A stretch of 64,000 nt of DNA from Perkinsela sp. CCAP 1560/9. Lineage: Eukaryota; Protista; Euglenozoa: Kinetoplastea. Below the pieces are notes generated by a model. That model was not told the origin of the DNA. It did no database searches and worked only from the letters and a program-made list of their open reading frames with translations. This document shows, one piece after another, positions 2,019-59,157 of this stretch. The stretch's first letter is position 1. Every line of letters starts with the position of its first letter. Both the position numbers and the translations under genes were made by a program. The stretch is from NCBI GenBank assembly GCA_965644495.1, contig CBFFSA010000015.1:186001-250000 (forward strand), given 5' to 3'.

Positions 2019-2338
2019 TTAATTTCTCATTTCGATGAGCATAGTGCTTCTCACTTCAAACTTCTCAAGAGTGTGAGGTAGGTTTTCTTTTACGTAAGAT
2101 CCTGAGAGCTTTTTATAATCACGAACAAAAATATTTACAAGGTTTGGGGGGAGAGAACCTAAATCTACACGTCCTTCAAAAAGATTCTCATGCAGGTAGA
2201 TGGAAGTCATGGAATTTGGTAATTTCTCTAAATTCGGTGTTCCACAAAAGGCATTGTGTCAAAGACTAATAAACTGAAGTTTTGTTGGGAGGTGGGTAAG
2301 ATCGAGATACCCTGATAACTTATTGCATTTCATATATT
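2019..2338 (-). pseudogene. 3' part of an LRR gene disrupted by LINE insertions
   Basis: Translates YMKCNKLSGYLDLTHLPTKLQFISL*HNAFCGTPNLEKLPNSMTSIYLHENLFEGRVDL with an in-frame TGA; continues from the LRR piece at 6525-6590. Confidence 0.8.
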
Positions 2339-2410
2339 GTATCATACAGGTAATCCTGCAGAGATTTATGTGGTGAAAACGCGCACTGAACGCGTTTTAG
2401 TCACCTGTTT

Positions 2411-5400
2411 CTATCCAGCGTCACCAAGAACGTTCTCCTCCATCCAATTTTTGCCATTGCGGTTTTGATATACTATGAAGCTCCCTCTCAGAGCCTTCAC
2501 GGTCATATTGCGCCGGCACTCAGCCACCAGCTCATCATTACCCACAAATAGAGAGTTCAGAGTTCGACCAGCACTGCTTATTTTTCCTCTCGCTCCGACT
2601 TCGAAAACGAGTAGGAAAGTGCTCGGGTTTGTGAGCTTGCGGGAATGGTAGAGATTTGTGTACTTGGCAGTTTTTCGTTCGTGTGCGTAGACAAAATTTT
2701 CCTCCCAGGGGCACGTCAATTCTATAATATACTCCTCCCCGTTGGACAGTTTCACCCACCCATCCGGTCGCAGCTCGGTGTCGAGTTCCGTGAGCCACGG
2801 AGGGGTAGAGCGAAAGTGAGGGAGGTCAAAGTGATATAGACTGGTCCCTTGGAATTTCTGCACAGAGTTTGCGAGGGCTTGTAGCACCATGTTATGTCGC
2901 AGAGTATATCGTCCTTGCTCGAGTGCTTTTCTACACCCGGAGAGAATATGTCGCGCGGTTTGCGTTTCAGTATCGCAGATGGGACACTTGTCGCTTGTGT
3001 GTGTCGATACGCCCCATTTGCGGAGAGACACTCTAGTAGGGAGTGGCGTTTCTGTGAGTACGGAAGCCGTAAATCGTGATAGCGATTCGCTTTTGAGATT
3101 ACATAGGGCGGCAGCGAAGTCCCTCGCGAGGTCTGCTTCCGTCGCTAAGCGGAACCATCTTCCCGCAACTGAAGTGCGCCTTTGCACGGCTTCCGAAAGA
3201 TGCCTCTCATATTCACTGTCGATAAGTCGTCGTACGTTATTGTGAGTTGAACCGAGTATGTCAGTCGGCGGACGAATGTACCCCGCTTTTCTCTTGTTTT
3301 CTTCTCTCCTGATGCGTTCTCGCAGGGCGTGCTGGACATCGGGATCGCGTGATTTCTCCATTTGTTCCACGGCGCTCGCGGTTGAAAGAAGCCATAGTTT
3401 GGATAAGCTCACGAGGTTCCAACCATGCTCGGAGTACAACAGTTCGCTTGTCGCGGATTTTGCTACATTTAACCATTTTCTGATTTCATTTGTAGCGCAT
3501 CGCTGGAGGCGCAGAACGTGGTTAAAAGTCAGACATGAATTGACAACAAAAGAGTAGCGAAGGCGGGAGATAAGGCGGGAGATACCATTATTGTATATCC
3601 AGAGTCGGGCGGGTAGGTCGTGGGCGCTGGAAGATACATGTATGTTGCGTAACCAGGTACGGAGTCGATTGCGTAGCTTTGGGAACAGAATTTTACCATA
3701 CTGGGCACCAGGTGCGAGAGTCATACCCAGGAATGTGCTACCATTATCGCATATTTGAGGAATAGGTGTTGCGTCAATCATTATCTGCGGTCGTCTTGTC
3801 ATGTAGCCTGAGTCTTGAGTCATTGCCATGTGTTGAATCCGACATTTCTTTGCGTTCAATTTCATTCCGATGCCGCCTAGAACTTTGACCAGTACGTTCG
3901 TGGCAATTTGCATTTCCTTTGGTGTGTTCGTGAGTATACTGAGGTCGTCAGCAAAGGCCTTCAGAGAGGTTTCCTTTCCATCCCAAGTGATTCCGTACTG
4001 TGGGCAACTTGAACGGATGAAGCGAAGAACCAATTCCATTGCCAAGTTGAATAAGATCGGCGACAGTGTATCTCCTTGTAATACTCCACGGCCGATCTCG
4101 AGCGACTTCGTAAGGCCTTCAGCACACTTGATTTGAATAGATGCTCCTTTATACAGCGCGCTGATATAGTTAATTAGAATTGGGGAGACACTGGCCCATT
4201 TTAGGGATTGTAACAGTACTGCGTGGGGGATAGATCCGAAAGCGTTCTTGATATCGAATTGTGCCAGTAAGTATTGCCGTTTGTGACGTCGTTGGTGTTC
4301 AAGGAGCTCGCATAAGACTTGTGTATGCTCGACGGTCCCATTCATGTGTGGTAGAAATCCTTTTTGTACTGATGTATCGAGCGCATGAGAATCCAAGGAA
4401 TGTTGAAGGATTCGGTGGCTCAGGATTGAATGGAAAAGTTTCCCTATGCAACTAGTTAAGCTTATCGGTCGCCAATTCTCCATAGTTGATGTAGGACCTC
4501 CTTTGTGTATGAGGCGAGTTACGGCAGATTTCCAGGTGGGGGGACAAACCCCGAATTTAAGGATGTCATTGAATACTTGAGCGATGTGGACAAAGATAGG
4601 GCTACAACGCTTGAGCAGAGCGTTGGATACAGTGTCTGATCCAGGAGCAGCGCCCGAGCGCTTGGAAGATACAGCAGATGCTATCATTTCGGCGTCAATA
4701 TCCGACCATGGTATGTCGATGTCAGGCCGTGGTCCCAAGAACTCGGCGGGGGGTATGCTGTGATTCTCTTCAGGTTTTGACAATGATGCCGCGAAGAAGT
4801 TCTCAACCTCTTGAAGAGGTACTGTAGGGTAAGACGTCTCGGGTTCCTGGATTGGGTCAGTGCGATCTAGGCATTCGCCCGCAGCTGTCCACGGGTTTCT
4901 CTGGAACCGAGTTAATGCCCATCGTCGATCGATTTCCCTCTTCTGTAGATTGGCTTCCTCCACGTACAACTTCAACGCTTTCTCTGCTTCCTTAATTTCT
5001 CCTCGCTGCTTGTTTCTCGCGACCCCCTTCATGAAGGTAAGTGCACGTTTGAGTTGACGAACATGTGTGCGAAGCCTCTTCGTGGTACGTTCGATGGCCA
5101 AGGGCCGCCAAGGGGGGATATTGCCATCTCTACTAACATGAGGTTCCGGGGAAGTGCGTGTATGAGAGAGTTCGTGGTTTACAGCCTGCGTACCGCTCAA
5201 GTTTCCTGTCTCGGATGGCCAGCTAGGGTGATACTGTGGTGATATTATGCTAGCATCGGCAGGAGATGTCCTCGTAAACAAATTCCTGAGTGACCATATT
5301 CGATTCTGACTGTTTTCTTCGACGATCATGACCCCTGTCTTGCAACATTGGTGTTTGCACTGAGTTTTATTGCTGCATATGTGCCGACACGGGCGACAGT

Positions 5401-6460
5401 TGGCCGTGTTTGCTGATATGGCGGACGACGGCGGATGACCGGTTGGCAGTTCCTCATACTGGGCCTCTTCGCTCGGTATGGCATCTGTCGAGACTTGCGG
5501 ATCGGTTTCTATCGATGTGGCTACTGTCGGTGGACTATGTGACCGTGTTAATGGTGACTCCCCGAGGTGCCGTTCTGGTCGAGGATTATCTGTAGCACCC
5601 GTGATGAGGACTCCTATTTTGCAGCACTGGTGCAAACAATTTGTCTTGTCGCGGCACGTATGCTTACAGGGCCTTCTGCCGGGAGCTAGTGAACTGTCTA
5701 TAGCCACGGCTTCCGAAGAGGGAAGAGGGACGCTAGGATGCACAGACCTTTCGGGTTTCACTTTGCAACATACGTGAAGACATGCTGCTTTGTCCCGGCA
5801 TTTATGGGCACAAGGGACACTTGGTTTAGTGGGCGGTAGTTTTGACACCTTGACGGGAGCATCACGGATTCTATATGGCGCGTCGTATGTGACCTCCGGG
5901 CAACGTTGGAGTTGTTCAACGGGTTGGGCCTTACGGGTCACGTGTGATATGCGGAATCGTCGTAAGCCTGGCACGTCACCGCCGCGCAATTTCTTTGTGA
6001 CGGCTTTGCCAAGCGCGTTCGAGGAGGAGTATTCTGTGTCAAGATGCATGTCGGAGTCTGTATAAGCAGAGCTCCAGCTCGTGTGATGAAATGTGCCACT
6101 AAGGTTTCCAATTTCATGGTACTCAACGTACTCGCATGCGTCGTTCTCGATGACATCTTGAGTGGTACACGTTTGTACTATCAGACCATCGCTCCTTTTG
6201 CTTCCCGACTTCAGGGTTTTTCCGAGGGAAGCTTCTGCTGTGTGCGTGCTTGAGAAAAACTCTCGTTCGGTAAGGGTGATGGCTGCGGCGTGCGTGTCGG
6301 GAAAATAGGACCACGAAACGCTATCAGAGGGGCGGATCTTCACTGGCAGCGCACGACTTCGGACGAAGTGAAAGTTCTGGGGGTGTCGCTGCGCGCTGAC
6401 AGGTCCTCGAGGGAGGCCGTCGTGCGCGTGGGGAGCTGGGGGTGTGACATTCGAGACCAT
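2411..6460 (-). CDS. 1349-aa retrotransposon protein: three Cys/His modules, reverse transcriptase, CCHC knuckle, restriction-like endonuclease
   Basis: NWRPISL, QKGF, DIKNAFGS, GVLQGDTLSP, FADD, CPIC..HILSGC, RHN, RPD, IIELTCPWEEN..K..KY; ORF uninterrupted. Confidence 0.95.
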   Translation of the reverse strand: MVSNVTPPAPHAHDGLPRGPVSAQRHPQNFHFVRSRALPVKIRPSDSVSWSYFPDTHAAAITLTEREFFSSTHTAEASLGKTLKSGSKRSDGLIVQTCTTQDVIENDACEYVEYHEIGNLSGTFHHTSWSSAYTDSDMHLDTEYSSSNALGKAVTKKLRGGDVPGLRRFRISHVTRKAQPVEQLQRCPEVTYDAPYRIRDAPVKVSKLPPTKPSVPCAHKCRDKAACLHVCCKVKPERSVHPSVPLPSSEAVAIDSSLAPGRRPCKHTCRDKTNCLHQCCKIGVLITGATDNPRPERHLGESPLTRSHSPPTVATSIETDPQVSTDAIPSEEAQYEELPTGHPPSSAISANTANCRPCRHICSNKTQCKHQCCKTGVMIVEENSQNRIWSLRNLFTRTSPADASIISPQYHPSWPSETGNLSGTQAVNHELSHTRTSPEPHVSRDGNIPPWRPLAIERTTKRLRTHVRQLKRALTFMKGVARNKQRGEIKEAEKALKLYVEEANLQKREIDRRWALTRFQRNPWTAAGECLDRTDPIQEPETSYPTVPLQEVENFFAASLSKPEENHSIPPAEFLGPRPDIDIPWSDIDAEMIASAVSSKRSGAAPGSDTVSNALLKRCSPIFVHIAQVFNDILKFGVCPPTWKSAVTRLIHKGGPTSTMENWRPISLTSCIGKLFHSILSHRILQHSLDSHALDTSVQKGFLPHMNGTVEHTQVLCELLEHQRRHKRQYLLAQFDIKNAFGSIPHAVLLQSLKWASVSPILINYISALYKGASIQIKCAEGLTKSLEIGRGVLQGDTLSPILFNLAMELVLRFIRSSCPQYGITWDGKETSLKAFADDLSILTNTPKEMQIATNVLVKVLGGIGMKLNAKKCRIQHMAMTQDSGYMTRRPQIMIDATPIPQICDNGSTFLGMTLAPGAQYGKILFPKLRNRLRTWLRNIHVSSSAHDLPARLWIYNNGISRLISRLRYSFVVNSCLTFNHVLRLQRCATNEIRKWLNVAKSATSELLYSEHGWNLVSLSKLWLLSTASAVEQMEKSRDPDVQHALRERIRREENKRKAGYIRPPTDILGSTHNNVRRLIDSEYERHLSEAVQRRTSVAGRWFRLATEADLARDFAAALCNLKSESLSRFTASVLTETPLPTRVSLRKWGVSTHTSDKCPICDTETQTARHILSGCRKALEQGRYTLRHNMVLQALANSVQKFQGTSLYHFDLPHFRSTPPWLTELDTELRPDGWVKLSNGEEYIIELTCPWEENFVYAHERKTAKYTNLYHSRKLTNPSTFLLVFEVGARGKISSAGRTLNSLFVGNDELVAECRRNMTVKALRGSFIVYQNRNGKNWMEENVLGDAG

Positions 6461-6496
6461 GCTCCGAAAGATAAGTTTAGTACAAAGTTAATAAAT

Positions 6497-6524
6497 CAAC
6501 AAGGTACAGAAACTGTATCTTTAT
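6497..6524 (-). other. Spliced-leader exon sequence (3' 28 nt) at the LINE 5' end, not followed by GT
   Basis: ATAAAGATACAGTTTCTGTACCTTGTTG contains the kinetoplastid SL core ACAGTTTCTGTAC..TTG; lies 36 nt before the ORF ATG. Confidence 0.85.
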
Positions 6525-6590
6525 GTAAGTTAGACTTTCTGGGAGATGGCAGAGATCTACAGTTCGCACAAACTGATTGTCAAAAATATA
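6525..6590 (-). pseudogene. Internal LRR gene fragment between two LINE insertions
   Basis: Translates YIFDNQFVRTVDLCHLPESLTY, one LRR unit that joins YMKCNKLSG at ~2338. Confidence 0.75.
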
Positions 6591-6591
6591 T

Positions 6592-7192
6592 TAATCATGC
6601 AGTTATACTGCAGAGATTAGCCCTAGGTAGGTAAGCACGCCCAAAACGTGCTACTTACTCGGGGATTACCACTTTATTGGAAGCCTTGCACCTCCCACGT
6701 GGGGTTGTCGCGGTGCTGGTAGATAACAAAGCTTCCCCGGAGTGCCCGCTGGACCATTCTCTCCCTGCACTCGGAGGCAAGGCTCTTGCATCCTCCGAAG
6801 AGAGAGTTCAGCGCGCGGGTTGTGGCGTTTAACTTTCCTCTTGCCCGAACTTCAAAAACCAGGTGGAAGGTGGAAGGGTTTTTTAATTTCCTCTGGTTAT
6901 AGATGTGAGAGTATTTACGAATCTTACGCTCGTGTGCGTCCGTGAAGTTTTCTTCCCAAGGGGAAGTCAGCTCAATGATGTATTCCGACCCGTTGTGCAA
7001 CTTCACCCACCCGTCTGGTCTCAATTCAGTTTGTTGCGAGAGCCAGGCGGGAGGGTTCCTGTGGAGGTACAGGTCGAAGTGCGAATGGGCCGCTGATGGT
7101 GATGCTGCTACGGTGTCCGCTAGTGTGAGCAGGATAAGGTCGTGTCGGTAAGTGAATCGTCCCTGACTGAGCGCAATTGGGCACCCAAAAAG
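6592..7192 (-). mobile_element. 5'-truncated copy of a related LINE (RLE domain plus 3' UTR; LINE copy 3)
   Basis: GCPIALSQGRFTYRHD, RPDGWVKL, IIELTSPWEEN; same 3' UTR structure as copies 1 and 2. Confidence 0.88.
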
Positions 7193-7337
7193 TTAGCCTA
7201 TGGTCACTTATCGTGACGGGGGGTTTATATACACTTACACTTATAATTTATATACACATATTTGCTACTTTCGCTTATAAGGTCAGTAAAAAAACCTTTC
7301 GAATGTCTCGATTTTTTTTCTTTTGTATACAGCCATT

Positions 7338-7836
7338 CACGTTGTTTATCATGCGCTCTTTGGCGCAGAGATAATCCCCTTAATGCGACGGCCGATATCA
7401 TCGGCACATAATCCGCCCACAACGGATGTCGCCAAAGGGGGTTCGACACGGACTCGGTCGGTAGAGGTGGTCCAGGCAACTCACCACCTCTTTACGCAGC
7501 CGGAGGGGCGCACTGCAACCGACCGCTGCCTCGCGATAATGCGAGGCAGAGTCACGCCCAGTGGTCCTCAAGGGAGGCCACCATGGCGCATAGCTCCCGG
7601 GAAGAGACAGGCGCGAGAAGAAGAAAGCCGGGGAGGGAAGAAAACTCACTCAAGGAGTGAGCCGGGGAGGGGTGAAAAGTCGGAAGTACGTCCCCTACTT
7701 CCACGACAAGAGGGACAGTCCCTGCTAGCCGTCAGCCGGAAACGGGCATTTAAAAGGAAAATGTATGCCCGTTTCCGGGAAAAGAAAGGAAGGGCTAGCA
7801 AAATGTACCAACAAGGTACAGAAACTGTATCTTTAT
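7338..7836 (-). mobile_element. SL-RNA-headed, highly structured non-autonomous retroelement (candidate SINE)
   Basis: Interrupts one Tc1 TIR while the other TIR gives the empty site; SL 28-mer plus GT at the 5' end; LINE-type 3' structure at 7348-7441. Confidence 0.8.
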
Positions 7837-8057
7837 ATTAATTATCACTGTTGCGCTGGTAATGTGTGCTAGTAGTGTCGGCATGAGTGTCACCTAATAG
7901 TACCCATAGGTAGTTCACCTCAGTTCGTTCTGCCCAAGAATTAAGAATGAATTTAAAAAAAAAGCATTCGAAAGATTTTTTTGCTACCTAACATAAATAA
8001 AATATAGCATCAAAAAAAAGATAAAAAAGAATTGCCCAAGAGAGTATATGCCCACAA

Positions 8058-8935
8058 ATTTAATACTTTGTATTCCCCCACGCGCCTTCAACACTGCCTT
8101 CATGCGGGCAGGCATGCTGTCCACCTGGGTACGACATACTGAGGCCGGTATGTTCGCCCACTCCTTCTTAACCCTCTCCCACAACTCTCGGACCCCACTT
8201 GGCGGATCATCGTGGTCCGCAAGGCGCCGCTTGAGCTCCCCCAAAACATTCTCGATGGGGTTTAAGTCAGGGGACTGCGGGGGCCACCGCATGACTTCAA
8301 ACCCGGTACCCTGGAGGTGCCGTTGCGCACACCGGCTGGTATGCTTGGGGTCGCTATCCTGTTGGGAGATAACTTTTCCAGGATCCAAGCCCATGCCATC
8401 AATTGATGGGACAAAATTTTCCTGTAAAATCTCGATGTACTGCTCTGCATTCAAGTTCCCTTGAACTAGACGCACATGTCTCACACCACTTCGGGACATA
8501 CACGCCCAAATCATTACATGACCCCCTCCATATTTGACCGTAGGGATCACCCCCTTTTCCCCCAGTTCCTCCCCTGGGGTCCCCCATGTCCATGACTCCC
8601 CCCCGTCTCAAAGCGCCAGATCTTGGTCTCGTCCGACCACACTACTGGCTCTCAATCATGGACTGTCCAGTGCTCATGGGCAGTAGCGTAGTCCATCCGA
8701 AGCTTTCTATGTCGCTTGGACAAGTACGGCTTTCGGACACGCTTCCTTCCCTTGTGTCCGAAGCGTTTCATCGAAACGCGGATGGATTGTGGGACGACAT
8801 CCACAACACCCTCCTGGCGGAGTTGAGAGGAAACCTCGCGCGCAGACTTACCCGAAAACACAAGTCGTCGCAGCGCGTCGTGCGCACGACTCGGAAATCT
8901 TGCGAGGGTGACCCCTCTTTAGCCTGCGAGTAGCA
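8058..8935 (-). pseudogene. Degenerate Tc1 (DD34E) transposase
   Basis: TVKYGGGHVMIWACM, QQDSDPKH, WPPQSPDLNPIEN; stops and frameshifts. Confidence 0.88.
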
Positions 8936-8993
8936 GGTCTTTCTGCCTTTAATACTTTAGAAACTGTAGATATGCTTAGATTTAAATTACCAG

Positions 8994-9214
8994 AAATCTA
9001 ACTCATCGAAAACCCGCTATCATAAAGCTCCGAAATGCGCGTTTGTAAGTACCGTGGTGTGGACCTCACACAGAGTGCAAAAATTAATCAAGAAAGTAAT
9101 AGTGTAAATTTAAATTAATCCAAAGTTTCTTCTTTTCTACGAGGCCCACGCCACGGTACTTACAAACGCGAATTTCGGAGCTTTATGATAGCGGGTTTTC
9201 GATGAGTTAGATTT
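8994..9214. repeat. Foldback: ~75-bp inverted repeat with ~72-bp spacer
   Basis: AAATCTAACTCATCGAAAACCCGCTATCATAAAGCTCCG... versus ...CGGAGCTTTATGATAGCGGGTTTTCGATGAGTTAGATTT. Confidence 0.8.
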
Positions 9215-9221
9215 TTTTTTG

Positions 9222-9690
9222 CTTTCGAAAATCGAGCGCAGGGAAGTGGTAGAGTATGCCGCAGCGATAATTTTCCACCCCCCCCCTGATACGCGCAGGA
9301 GGGGTCCGACAAGGTTAAAATTTCTGAAATTTTTGGGGCAACCAAAAATTTTTTTTTGTTTCAAAAAAAAGTAAAAATATTATTTTTCCAAAATCGACTC
9401 CTAAAACGTATTTGGAGAGTTTGGGACCTCAGCTACCATTCTACGACGTTTTTTCCGACAGATTCGACTCCTGCCCCTACTGGTAAAGCATCAAAAACGG
9501 CACAAAATCGGGTTAAATTTTCGCAAAAATCGAGCTTTTTCACCCAAAAAAATAGGTTATTCATGATCTTTTGGCAATTTTTCTTTTATGGGCTCTTCGT
9601 TAAACGCGGTGGTAGTTTTCAACGCAAAGCGCGCAGCATGAGTGACTTCTAAGTTGAAAATAACCGCCGCGTTTAACGAAGAGCCTAAAA
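9222..9690 (+). repeat. Repeat family A, partial copy (large terminal hairpin end)
   Basis: Near-identical to 39115-39592. Confidence 0.8.
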
Positions 9691-10309
9691 AAGAAATATC
9701 TATTTATGGGCATATATTCTCCCGGGCAATTCTTTTTTATCTTTTTTTGATGCAATATTTTATTAATGTTAGGTAGCAAAAAAACCTTTCGAATGCTATT
9801 TTTTTTTAAATTTATTCTTAATTCTTGGGCAGAACGAACTGAGGTGAACTATCTGTGGGTACTATTAGGTGACACTCATGCCTACACTACACTCATGCCT
9901 ACTAGCACACATTACCAGCGCAACAGTGATAATTAATCAATGGCTGTATACAAAAGAAAAAAAATTCGAAACATTCGAACGGTTTTTTTACTGACCTTAT
10001 ATACACTTATATTATTTACACTTATTTGAAGGGTTTTGCAATTTTTAGACCCCCCGCAGCATCTGATTTACCCCCCTGTATACACTTGTGTATACAGATA
10101 ATTATGTGTATATAAACCAGGGGGGTTTATAACCAGGGGGGGTTACTTGAAAGACAATTACTGTTGGTGAAGTCTGTTGTATGCCGTCAGTTAACTGTGA
10201 ATACCGTCTATTGCACTTTACTGCACGTTTTTCGTAGCTTTGCTTTTTTTAGGCTGTCGACCTGGGGCAGAGCAAGTTTTTTCGACCACTGTCAGAAATT
10301 TTCTACTAC

Positions 10310-58190: not shown

Positions 58191-59157
58191 CCGTTATCTC
58201 ACCCCCTTACTTAGCCCCCACTTTTCGGTCCAAAACCCGTACTCTGTGAAGTAAGGGGGGTGGTGAAGTAAGGGAGGTGAATAAGTGATTCAAAGTTCGA
58301 TCAATTTATAGTTCTCTCGGAAATCCTCAAATTATTGAAGCACACTATGCTATCGACATTGAGCATAATTTCCTTTTCTTGAGTTTTGTAATACCTCGTG
58401 TTGCACATTCTATATTTTATGTTTCTTTTAGCTTGTCCACGATGTCCCATGCGTTTTTAACTTTCCCCCCATGAAAATTTCTTACATCGTAACATTTAAA
58501 TGATGTCGCAGAGTATAACCTATTGAACATCAATTTAAATTTTAGAACTACAAGACGCTGTGGCGCAACTTTATGATCAAAGCGATGATGAAACTGACAT
58601 GGAAGAAAATCGTTCTGAATTTGAAATGATTCAACGAATCTAAATCATTTCGGGTTGCTCCGATCGGTCACTGGCAAGCCGGACCCTTCACAGATAGATT
58701 TGGAAGTCTCAAGGCCGAAGTCCTCTACCTTTTTTCGTTACACACAACAACGTGCTGCTACCAACCCGTTGCGTCGATGAACCCAAAACAATCTTCAAAA
58801 GTTATCATTCCTGCAGCTACGTAGCATTCCTGCGGACGTTAACATTCCCCCCCGGAACGTTAAACCGGACTGTGGTTTAAAATCCCGGTATGACGGCGTC
58901 GTCTTCACTAAGAAAGTTGCACCAAGAATCTTTGTGCATCGATCTGTGTGCCATCTGTGTCTCCCCTTGAAGACCACTGGGCGTGGCTCTGCTTCGCCTT
59001 GCCCCGATGTAACGGTCGGTTGCAGTGCACCCCTCCGGCTGTGTAAAGAGGTGGTAAGTTGCCTGGGGAAAAATCTGACACCCCCCTTACTTCACCACGC
59101 GTCCGGTGACTAAATGTGGTGAAGTAAGGGGGGAGGCGAAGTAAGGGGGGGTAACGG
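58191..59157. mobile_element. TA-flanked non-autonomous TIR element
   Basis: CCGTTA..CCCCCTTACTT ... AAGTAAGGGGGGGTAACGG; GAAGTAAGGG subrepeats. Confidence 0.75.

Follow-up and report, generated by a model that had tools for sequence, protein, structure and literature searches.

In the 64,000-nt stretch of DNA that we analysed (the window), a 499-nt non-coding insert read on the minus strand and headed by part of the spliced leader (SL) lies in the left inverted repeat of a Tc1/mariner-like transposon. Downstream on the same strand is a LINE that is its likely partner (Table 1). The inverted repeats of the transposon span 7276-8059, with the insert inside, and 9702-10001. A first, sequence-only reading of this DNA had recognised these repeats but had assumed that they ended farther in than 7276 and 10001. 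The transposase survives as minus-strand remnants at 7984-8550 and 8652-8861, which are frameshifted DDE_3 and HTH_Tnp_Tc3_2 fragments.

The right arm of the transposon fixes the junctions of the insert. Its flanks are 100 % complementary to segments of the right arm, 7311-7337 to 9939-9965 and 7837-7875 to 9899-9937, and there the two segments adjoin with a single base between them. In contigs from public DNA runs, which we assume to come from other copies of the transposon, 7337 is joined to 7837 via one G. The insert therefore occupies exactly 7338-7836, having replaced one base with no target-site duplication, as had been read from the right repeat alone. Within the same Tc1-like element, 8994-9214 holds a 74-nt inverted repeat (96 % complementary, 73-nt spacer) that may be a nested small insertion.

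Table 1. Features of the insert, its host transposon and the neighbouring LINE, in window positions
Feature	Position	Strand	Evidence
SL-headed non-coding retroposon, one copy, 499 nt	7338..7836	-	Junctions from host inverted-repeat comparison
28-nt truncated leader, nt 11-38 of the 38-nt SL exon	7809..7836	-	Identical to SL RNA gene (L033); same start in 30 SINE and 12 LINE copies
GTAC directly after leader	7805..7808	-	GTA matches the real splice donor; with the leader gives 6-bp stem TGTACC/GGTACA
5' domain: perfect 14-bp hairpin (7736-7749 with 7765-7778) within 8-bp outer stem (7723-7730 with 7793-7800)	7723..7800	-	Inverted-repeat search
3' terminal hairpin: ATCTC, 5-bp stem, ATGAT; then A-rich end AAACAA plus 0-5 variable nt	7348..7372	-	Alignment of copy and LINE 3' ends
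Host Tc1/mariner-like transposon, inverted repeats ~290 bp, frameshifted transposase	7276..10001	.	Inverted-repeat comparison and domain matches
Likely partner LINE	2334..6524	-	Leader, ORF domains, 3' hairpin
Partner LINE, 28-nt leader, same as element	6497-6524	-	Sequence identity
Partner LINE, intact ORF of 1349 aa: RT, CCHC, RLE	2411-6460	-	Pfam and alignment to R2 proteins
Partner LINE, hairpin at end of 3' UTR, same type as element	about 2341-2365	-	3'-end comparison
3' hairpin belonging to a further element of this kind (candidate LINE or SINE)	6586..6623	-	57 nt upstream of partner LINE leader

The insert had been predicted to be one copy of a retroposon with discrete ends rather than a single-copy sequence, and a search of the genome (21 Mb in 110 contigs) agrees with this, revealing more than 100 dispersed copies. 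The 499-nt query gave 76 matches among 269 first-look candidates, and the leader core followed by GTAC is found at 78 exact sites. The hairpin arm of subfamilies B and C has 82 exact copies, a count that covers these two subfamilies only, as subfamily A differs by one base in the pattern and adds at least 23 copies. Most young copies are about 575 nt long because nt 314-393 of the element are duplicated, while the copy in the window and two others represent a short form that lacks this 80-nt internal duplication. Among the long copies of the youngest subfamily, 17 are within 0.7-2.5 % of their own consensus and two are at 7-9 %.

The ends of the copies are fixed. In the 30 copies that we inspected, the flanks are unrelated in every case and the start falls at ATAAAG or no more than a few nt from it, and the 3' ends consist of a hairpin, then AAACAA or ACATCAAAA, then 0-5 variable nt. 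Rather than showing the variable 5' truncation anticipated earlier, nearly all copies are full length, beginning at SL nt 11 and closing in one small hairpin. The family is thus SINE-like in being short, non-coding, dispersed in many copies and bounded by discrete common ends. It lacks the target-site duplications of classical SINEs, for a duplication is absent in 27 of the 30 copies and none is consistent. The absence of duplications, together with the single nt replaced in the window, fits RLE-type LINEs. Elsewhere in the window, at 58941-59066 on the plus strand, an isolated 126-nt piece with unrelated flanks is 83 % identical to element nt 241-365 and is either an old fragment or a module common to another repeat.

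On the minus strand the insert begins with ATAAAGATACAGTTTCTGTACCTTGTTG followed by GTACA, a start that had been taken for the SL exon core and splice donor. The leader is one of the kinetoplastid type, and the SL RNA genes of the genome bear this reading out. They form two 297-bp tandem units at about 661.3 kb (L033, G000:C1:659826-662848) and read AACTTTAACG plus the 28-mer, together the 38-nt exon, and then GTATGAGAAGCTTCG. A 5S rRNA gene lies about 400 bp away on the opposite strand, and a DNA-run contig also has the true intron after the leader. An antisense SINE tail is located about 300 bp downstream of these genes.

The likeness to the SL RNA gene is confined to nt 11-41, that is, 28 exon nt plus GTA. 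The body of the element aligns with the real SL intron with a local score of 13 compared to 16 +/- 1.9 for shuffled sequences, which is below the shuffle mean. The first 10 nt of the leader (the cap-4 region) are absent from the copies, no conserved promoter is found upstream, where the flanks of the copies are unrelated, and no Sm-type motif was seen in the inspected subfamilies B and C, in line with the lack of a clear Sm site noted before. The element accordingly has none of the hallmarks of a functional SL RNA gene, namely a full exon, a promoter with a tandem or 5S-linked arrangement, and intron homology with an Sm site. From these features, the suggestion that it might donate SL in trans-splicing appears unlikely. 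A search of Rfam with the whole window at gathering thresholds, and with 6200-7900 at E <= 5, returned no SL RNA, ribozyme or small-RNA family, the sole matches being to miRNA and snoRNA at chance level. A head of the classical SINE kind, derived from a small RNA gene that contains its own Pol III promoter, is thus also not seen; in its place are 28 nt of SL exon and GTA.

The RNA of the element is predicted to be highly structured. The 499-nt insert folds at -210 kcal/mol (z = -7.15 compared to shuffles) and contains perfect inverted repeats with arms of 14, 9 and 8 nt, so that the hairpin arms named earlier are present. We built a consensus fold from 18 copies of several subfamilies. It keeps the stem between the leader and GTAC, which resembles stem-loop I of SL RNA and is retained in 18 of the 18 aligned copies, and also a helix in which leader bases ACAGTTTC pair with a conserved GRAACTGT some 100 nt downstream. 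The long 5' hairpin is kept as well. Two of its pairs, one in the 14-bp core and one in a 2-bp extension at the base, are changed on both sides between subfamilies.

The ORF of the partner LINE has an RVT_1 domain. Its residues 588-1296 align with solved R2 proteins from the RT through the CCHC and the PD-(D/E)xK endonuclease (E = 2e-34), and Pfam shows no Exo_endo_phos domain in it that would indicate an APE endonuclease. This architecture, with RT followed by CCHC and PD-(D/E)xK endonuclease and no APE, is that of the RLE LINEs of the R2 superclade. The label "HERO-like" given before is correct as to the RLE group (R2 / NeSL / CRE / R4 / HERO), as judged by the alignment of RT, CCHC and endonuclease. 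The named database relatives of the ORF are R2-type, TX1-type or of unnamed type, none labelled CRE, and the best are R2 proteins; some relatives of unnamed type carry the Ulp1 protease domain PF02902, which we take to be associated with NeSL.

The 5' UTR of this LINE is 36 nt long and contains TTTTGTAC, with no GT after the leader. We found 12 copies of the LINE in several subfamilies, 73-98 % identical to the query LINE. The leader is present in all 12, starting at or a few nt from the same position with unrelated flanks upstream, and the 5' UTR variants abut it after AA, not AG. BLAST detects no similarity between the LINE and the ~440-nt body of the element, and only short motifs are common to the two. 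A leader common to the element and the LINE suggests a 5' module that is shared by the pair and comes from an SL-carrying RNA, not a head taken from the SL RNA gene.

The pair also has a common 3' end. LINE copies end in ATCTCTGCAGgattaCCTGTATGATACAATAT, after which the flanks diverge, and the SINE subfamilies end in the same ATCTCTGC ... ATGA frame with different stem letters (GCGC/GCGC, GCAC/GTGC or GCAG/CTGC). Aligning 24 SINE and LINE sequences over this hairpin revealed 12 invariant columns, in the flanks and in the stem. Paired positions make up 94 % of cells compared to 12-46 % in a control with the partner slid. Between the SINE subfamilies and the LINEs, both bases are exchanged in two of the pairs, AU to GC in 9 sequences and CG to GC in 8. 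As expected of a SINE, the element has its 3' end in common with an autonomous LINE of the same genome. The tail had been described as having two structures of the LINE 3' UTRs. This is true of the terminal hairpin; a second hairpin lies upstream in both, but it is unlike in sequence and spacing and is not homologous. The stem letters GCGC of the subfamily at 7338-7836 occur in none of the LINE copies seen, so that recognition would have to rest on shape and flanking bases.

The view of the element as the non-autonomous partner of the R2-like LINE is well supported, because the two have the same 28-nt leader and the same 3' hairpin with compensatory stem changes. We consider that the insert is probably a SINE-like, structured retroposon without enzymes of its own, copied by the R2-like RLE-type LINE protein of the same genome, and we infer that the partner LINE mobilises it in trans. 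The LINE protein would recognise the small hairpin that ends both LINE and SINE, nick DNA at sites for which the examined flanks show no evident consensus and start target-primed reverse transcription from the 3' end of the RNA, insertion usually taking place without target duplication.

Several copies carry traces of the copying process. Two of them (L015 and L026) duplicate the last 11-13 nt of the 3' tail, head-to-tail dimers occur at several loci, and partial leaders are stacked in some copies. Of 44 copies with a truncated leader, 6 are preceded by incomplete repeats of the initial leader bases, in several cases more than one, against an expectation of about 1 such copy. Tail duplications, dimers and stacked or partial leader repeats of this kind are typical of end-to-end template jumping by the R2 reverse transcriptase. 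No matching public run is on record as RNA; one that we guess to be RNA covers the leader only, in contigs that cannot show RNA ends.

How the leader came to head both elements and how it is maintained may be explained in several ways. One explanation, possible though on the whole unlikely, is that the RNA of the element undergoes trans-splicing as an mRNA does and so gains a new leader every cycle, with the point at which the LINE reverse transcriptase stops setting the 28-nt length. No SINE or LINE subfamily departs from the host SL in its consensus leader, though the bodies differ by 15-27 %, and the leader in single copies decays like the rest of the element. In three copies, moreover, the leader is attached immediately behind the AG of GTACATTTTCCTTTAG, and in the copy L080 a new leader follows an internal CAG of the old one. 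In the DNA copies, however, an AG acceptor is missing from the main junction, TTG|GTAC, and from those of the LINE, whose 5' UTR variants meet the leader after AA, and without AG plain re-splicing cannot regenerate the leader/body junction. Neither was a leaderless master found: AG|GTAC gave 3 matches in the genome compared to 4 in a control, and none continues into the element. The stutters of the leader are moreover indicative of an RNA with its end at nt 11, or of copying that stops there. A recurrent A-to-G variant of the leader, considered as a sign of a second SL pool, is present at 5 sites only and fits independent mutation.

The origin proposed at first, in which the head with exon, splice donor and stem-loop I derives from the SL RNA gene in the way that classical SINEs have tRNA, 7SL or 5S heads, is doubtful. 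In its favour, the identity crosses the exon/intron border, GTA matches the real splice donor, the GTAC after the leader is retained in most subfamilies, the stem-loop I-like stem is universal among the aligned copies, and the search for a master in which an AG acceptor precedes GTAC gave none. Yet the 3 nt common beyond the exon amount to a 1 in 64 chance match, and the rest of the intron is dissimilar, so that alignment to the SL RNA repeat, which might have shown identity over the full length, ends 3 nt into the intron. The missing first 10 nt and upstream promoter, the lack of an Sm site and of an Rfam match, the LINE with the same leader and no GT, variants in which the leader meets the body at +2, +10 or +17, and about 790 leader relics of many kinds in the genome all speak against it. 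Inheritance of the head from the SL RNA gene is not supported by these comparisons.

It is also conceivable, but quite unlikely, that the leader was captured when the R2-like reverse transcriptase jumped from the 5' end of the element RNA to an RNA ending in the SL, for example a free SL exon. The stacked partial leaders, tail duplications and dimers demonstrate that jumping occurs, and in each of the several leader/body junction variants the exon is kept precisely to its 3' end. On the other hand, the main junction does not vary within a subfamily, a leader is present in nearly all copies, and such capture leaves the fixed start at nt 11 and the GTA unexplained. Just as improbable to our mind is an internally deleted LINE derivative comparable to RIME, NARTc or the R2 SIDEs: the 5' 28 nt and the 3' hairpin are common to the LINE, and a short deletion within its TTTTGTAC would yield leader plus GTAC, but the ~440-nt body is without BLAST similarity to the LINE.

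Lastly, we envisage as a speculation of very low probability that the leader acts as a functional 5' module in an R2-like LINE/SINE pair descended from an SL-gene-specific (CRE-like) element that has since escaped site specificity, the old target sequence being reused in translation, in protein binding or to define the 5' end. The insertion site of SLACS and CZAR in the mini-exon is between nt 11 and 12 (PMC5814959), and trypanosomatid leaders are 39 nt long with a conserved core (PMC3795323). When aligned on this core, the leader start at nt 11 in our elements falls on the base that immediately follows the SLACS/CZAR insertion site on its 3' side, a coincidence that we treat as a lead only. 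With the leader edge at this cut position, the identity of the SINE to SL gene nt 11-41 looks like a carried-off target half or a target duplication. The partner LINE resembles the CRE clade (SLACS, CZAR, CRE1/2) and NeSL-1 in being an RLE-type LINE tied to the spliced leader. CRE elements, however, sit in SL genes and end in poly(A), whereas the copies described here are dispersed, have the leader half at their own 5' end and close in a hairpin. The two assembled SL genes are uninterrupted, in an assembly where SL arrays may be collapsed. The agreement of the leader edge with the CRE-clade cut site may link dispersed and SL-gene-specific RLE elements.

Leader sequences are widespread in this genome beyond the pair. 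The 19-nt SL core has 489 exact copies compared to 0 for a reversed control, and about 790 leader ends precede dozens of different sequences. Like these SL relics, the element is a retro-copy with a DNA-encoded leader at its 5' end; its fixed start at nt 11 is specific to the LINE/SINE pair, and other LINE and retroelement lineages bear near-full leaders. One of them, a second LINE lineage (L094, G000:C39:69500-74500), begins with AACTAACG plus the 28-mer, a near-full leader directly after an A run, and has a 1191-aa RT ORF that is only 29 % identical to the window LINE in the RT core. Many heads of other families read (A)TCTTTAACG where the SL gene has AACTTTAACG, which may reflect miscopying at a modified cap-4 base. 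With a DNA-encoded leader in a LINE, in the non-coding parasite of that LINE and in hundreds of other retro-copies, leader-carrying RNA is a common template for reverse transcription in this organism. A separate locus (L087, G000:C1:409300-410200) carries an SL RNA fragment of about nt 4-38 plus 12 nt of true intron and then a short A run, and looks like a retro-pseudogene of the SL RNA itself.

Among known systems, the R2 SIDEs are short, internally deleted R2 elements of Drosophila that are site-specific in rDNA and keep the 5' ribozyme. The family described here is likewise a non-coding parasite of an R2-type LINE that keeps its 5' and 3' RNA ends, but it is dispersed and headed by a leader, and Rfam found no ribozyme in it. 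Classical SINEs, with tRNA, 7SL, 5S or snRNA heads, are similarly short, non-coding and multi-copy and borrow their 3' end from a LINE; unlike them, our family has no detectable Pol III-type head and starts with 28 nt of a Pol II-made leader common to the LINE. The trypanosomatid LINEs L1Tc and ingi have been reported to produce unspliced transcripts from an internal promoter (Pr77).

The closest parallels to a leader-headed pair are the DinoSL relic retrogenes and the RIME and NARTc pairs. RIME/ingi and NARTc/L1Tc, the trypanosomatid pairs, are joined by the Pr77 5' signature (PMC8190864, PMC1874656). As in those pairs, a kinetoplastid non-autonomous retroposon combines here a short 5' signature with a 3' end common to the LINE. 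The partner in our case is however an RLE (R2-like) rather than an APE-type LINE, the 5' signature is part of the spliced leader and not Pr77, and the body is unrelated to the LINE, with neither poly(A) nor target duplication. In dinoflagellates, DNA copies of SL-carrying RNA keep the 5' leader, sometimes stacked (PMC6050394, PMC5585692, PMC12014239). DinoSL relics are retroposed host genes, whereas the carriers here are a LINE and a SINE-like family; DinoSL ends in AG and is re-spliceable, whereas our leader has TG at its end and is shortened to 28 nt. We found no published report of a leader-headed LINE or SINE in kinetoplastids in the searched literature on SL with retroposon, SINE or relic, and no occurrence of the leader sequence in a full-text search. 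As in dinoflagellates, leader relics offer a built-in tag for finding and dating retroposition events. The natural LINE/SINE pair presents a 28-nt 5' module and a 25-nt 3' hairpin as testable recognition signals for an R2-type enzyme.

At one further locus (L018, G000:C12:199176-202565), a SINE copy lies directly before a LINE leader with an 11-bp duplication (GAGAACTTTGA), an arrangement which suggests that insertion or 5' joining took place at the nt 10|11 edge of a leader already there.
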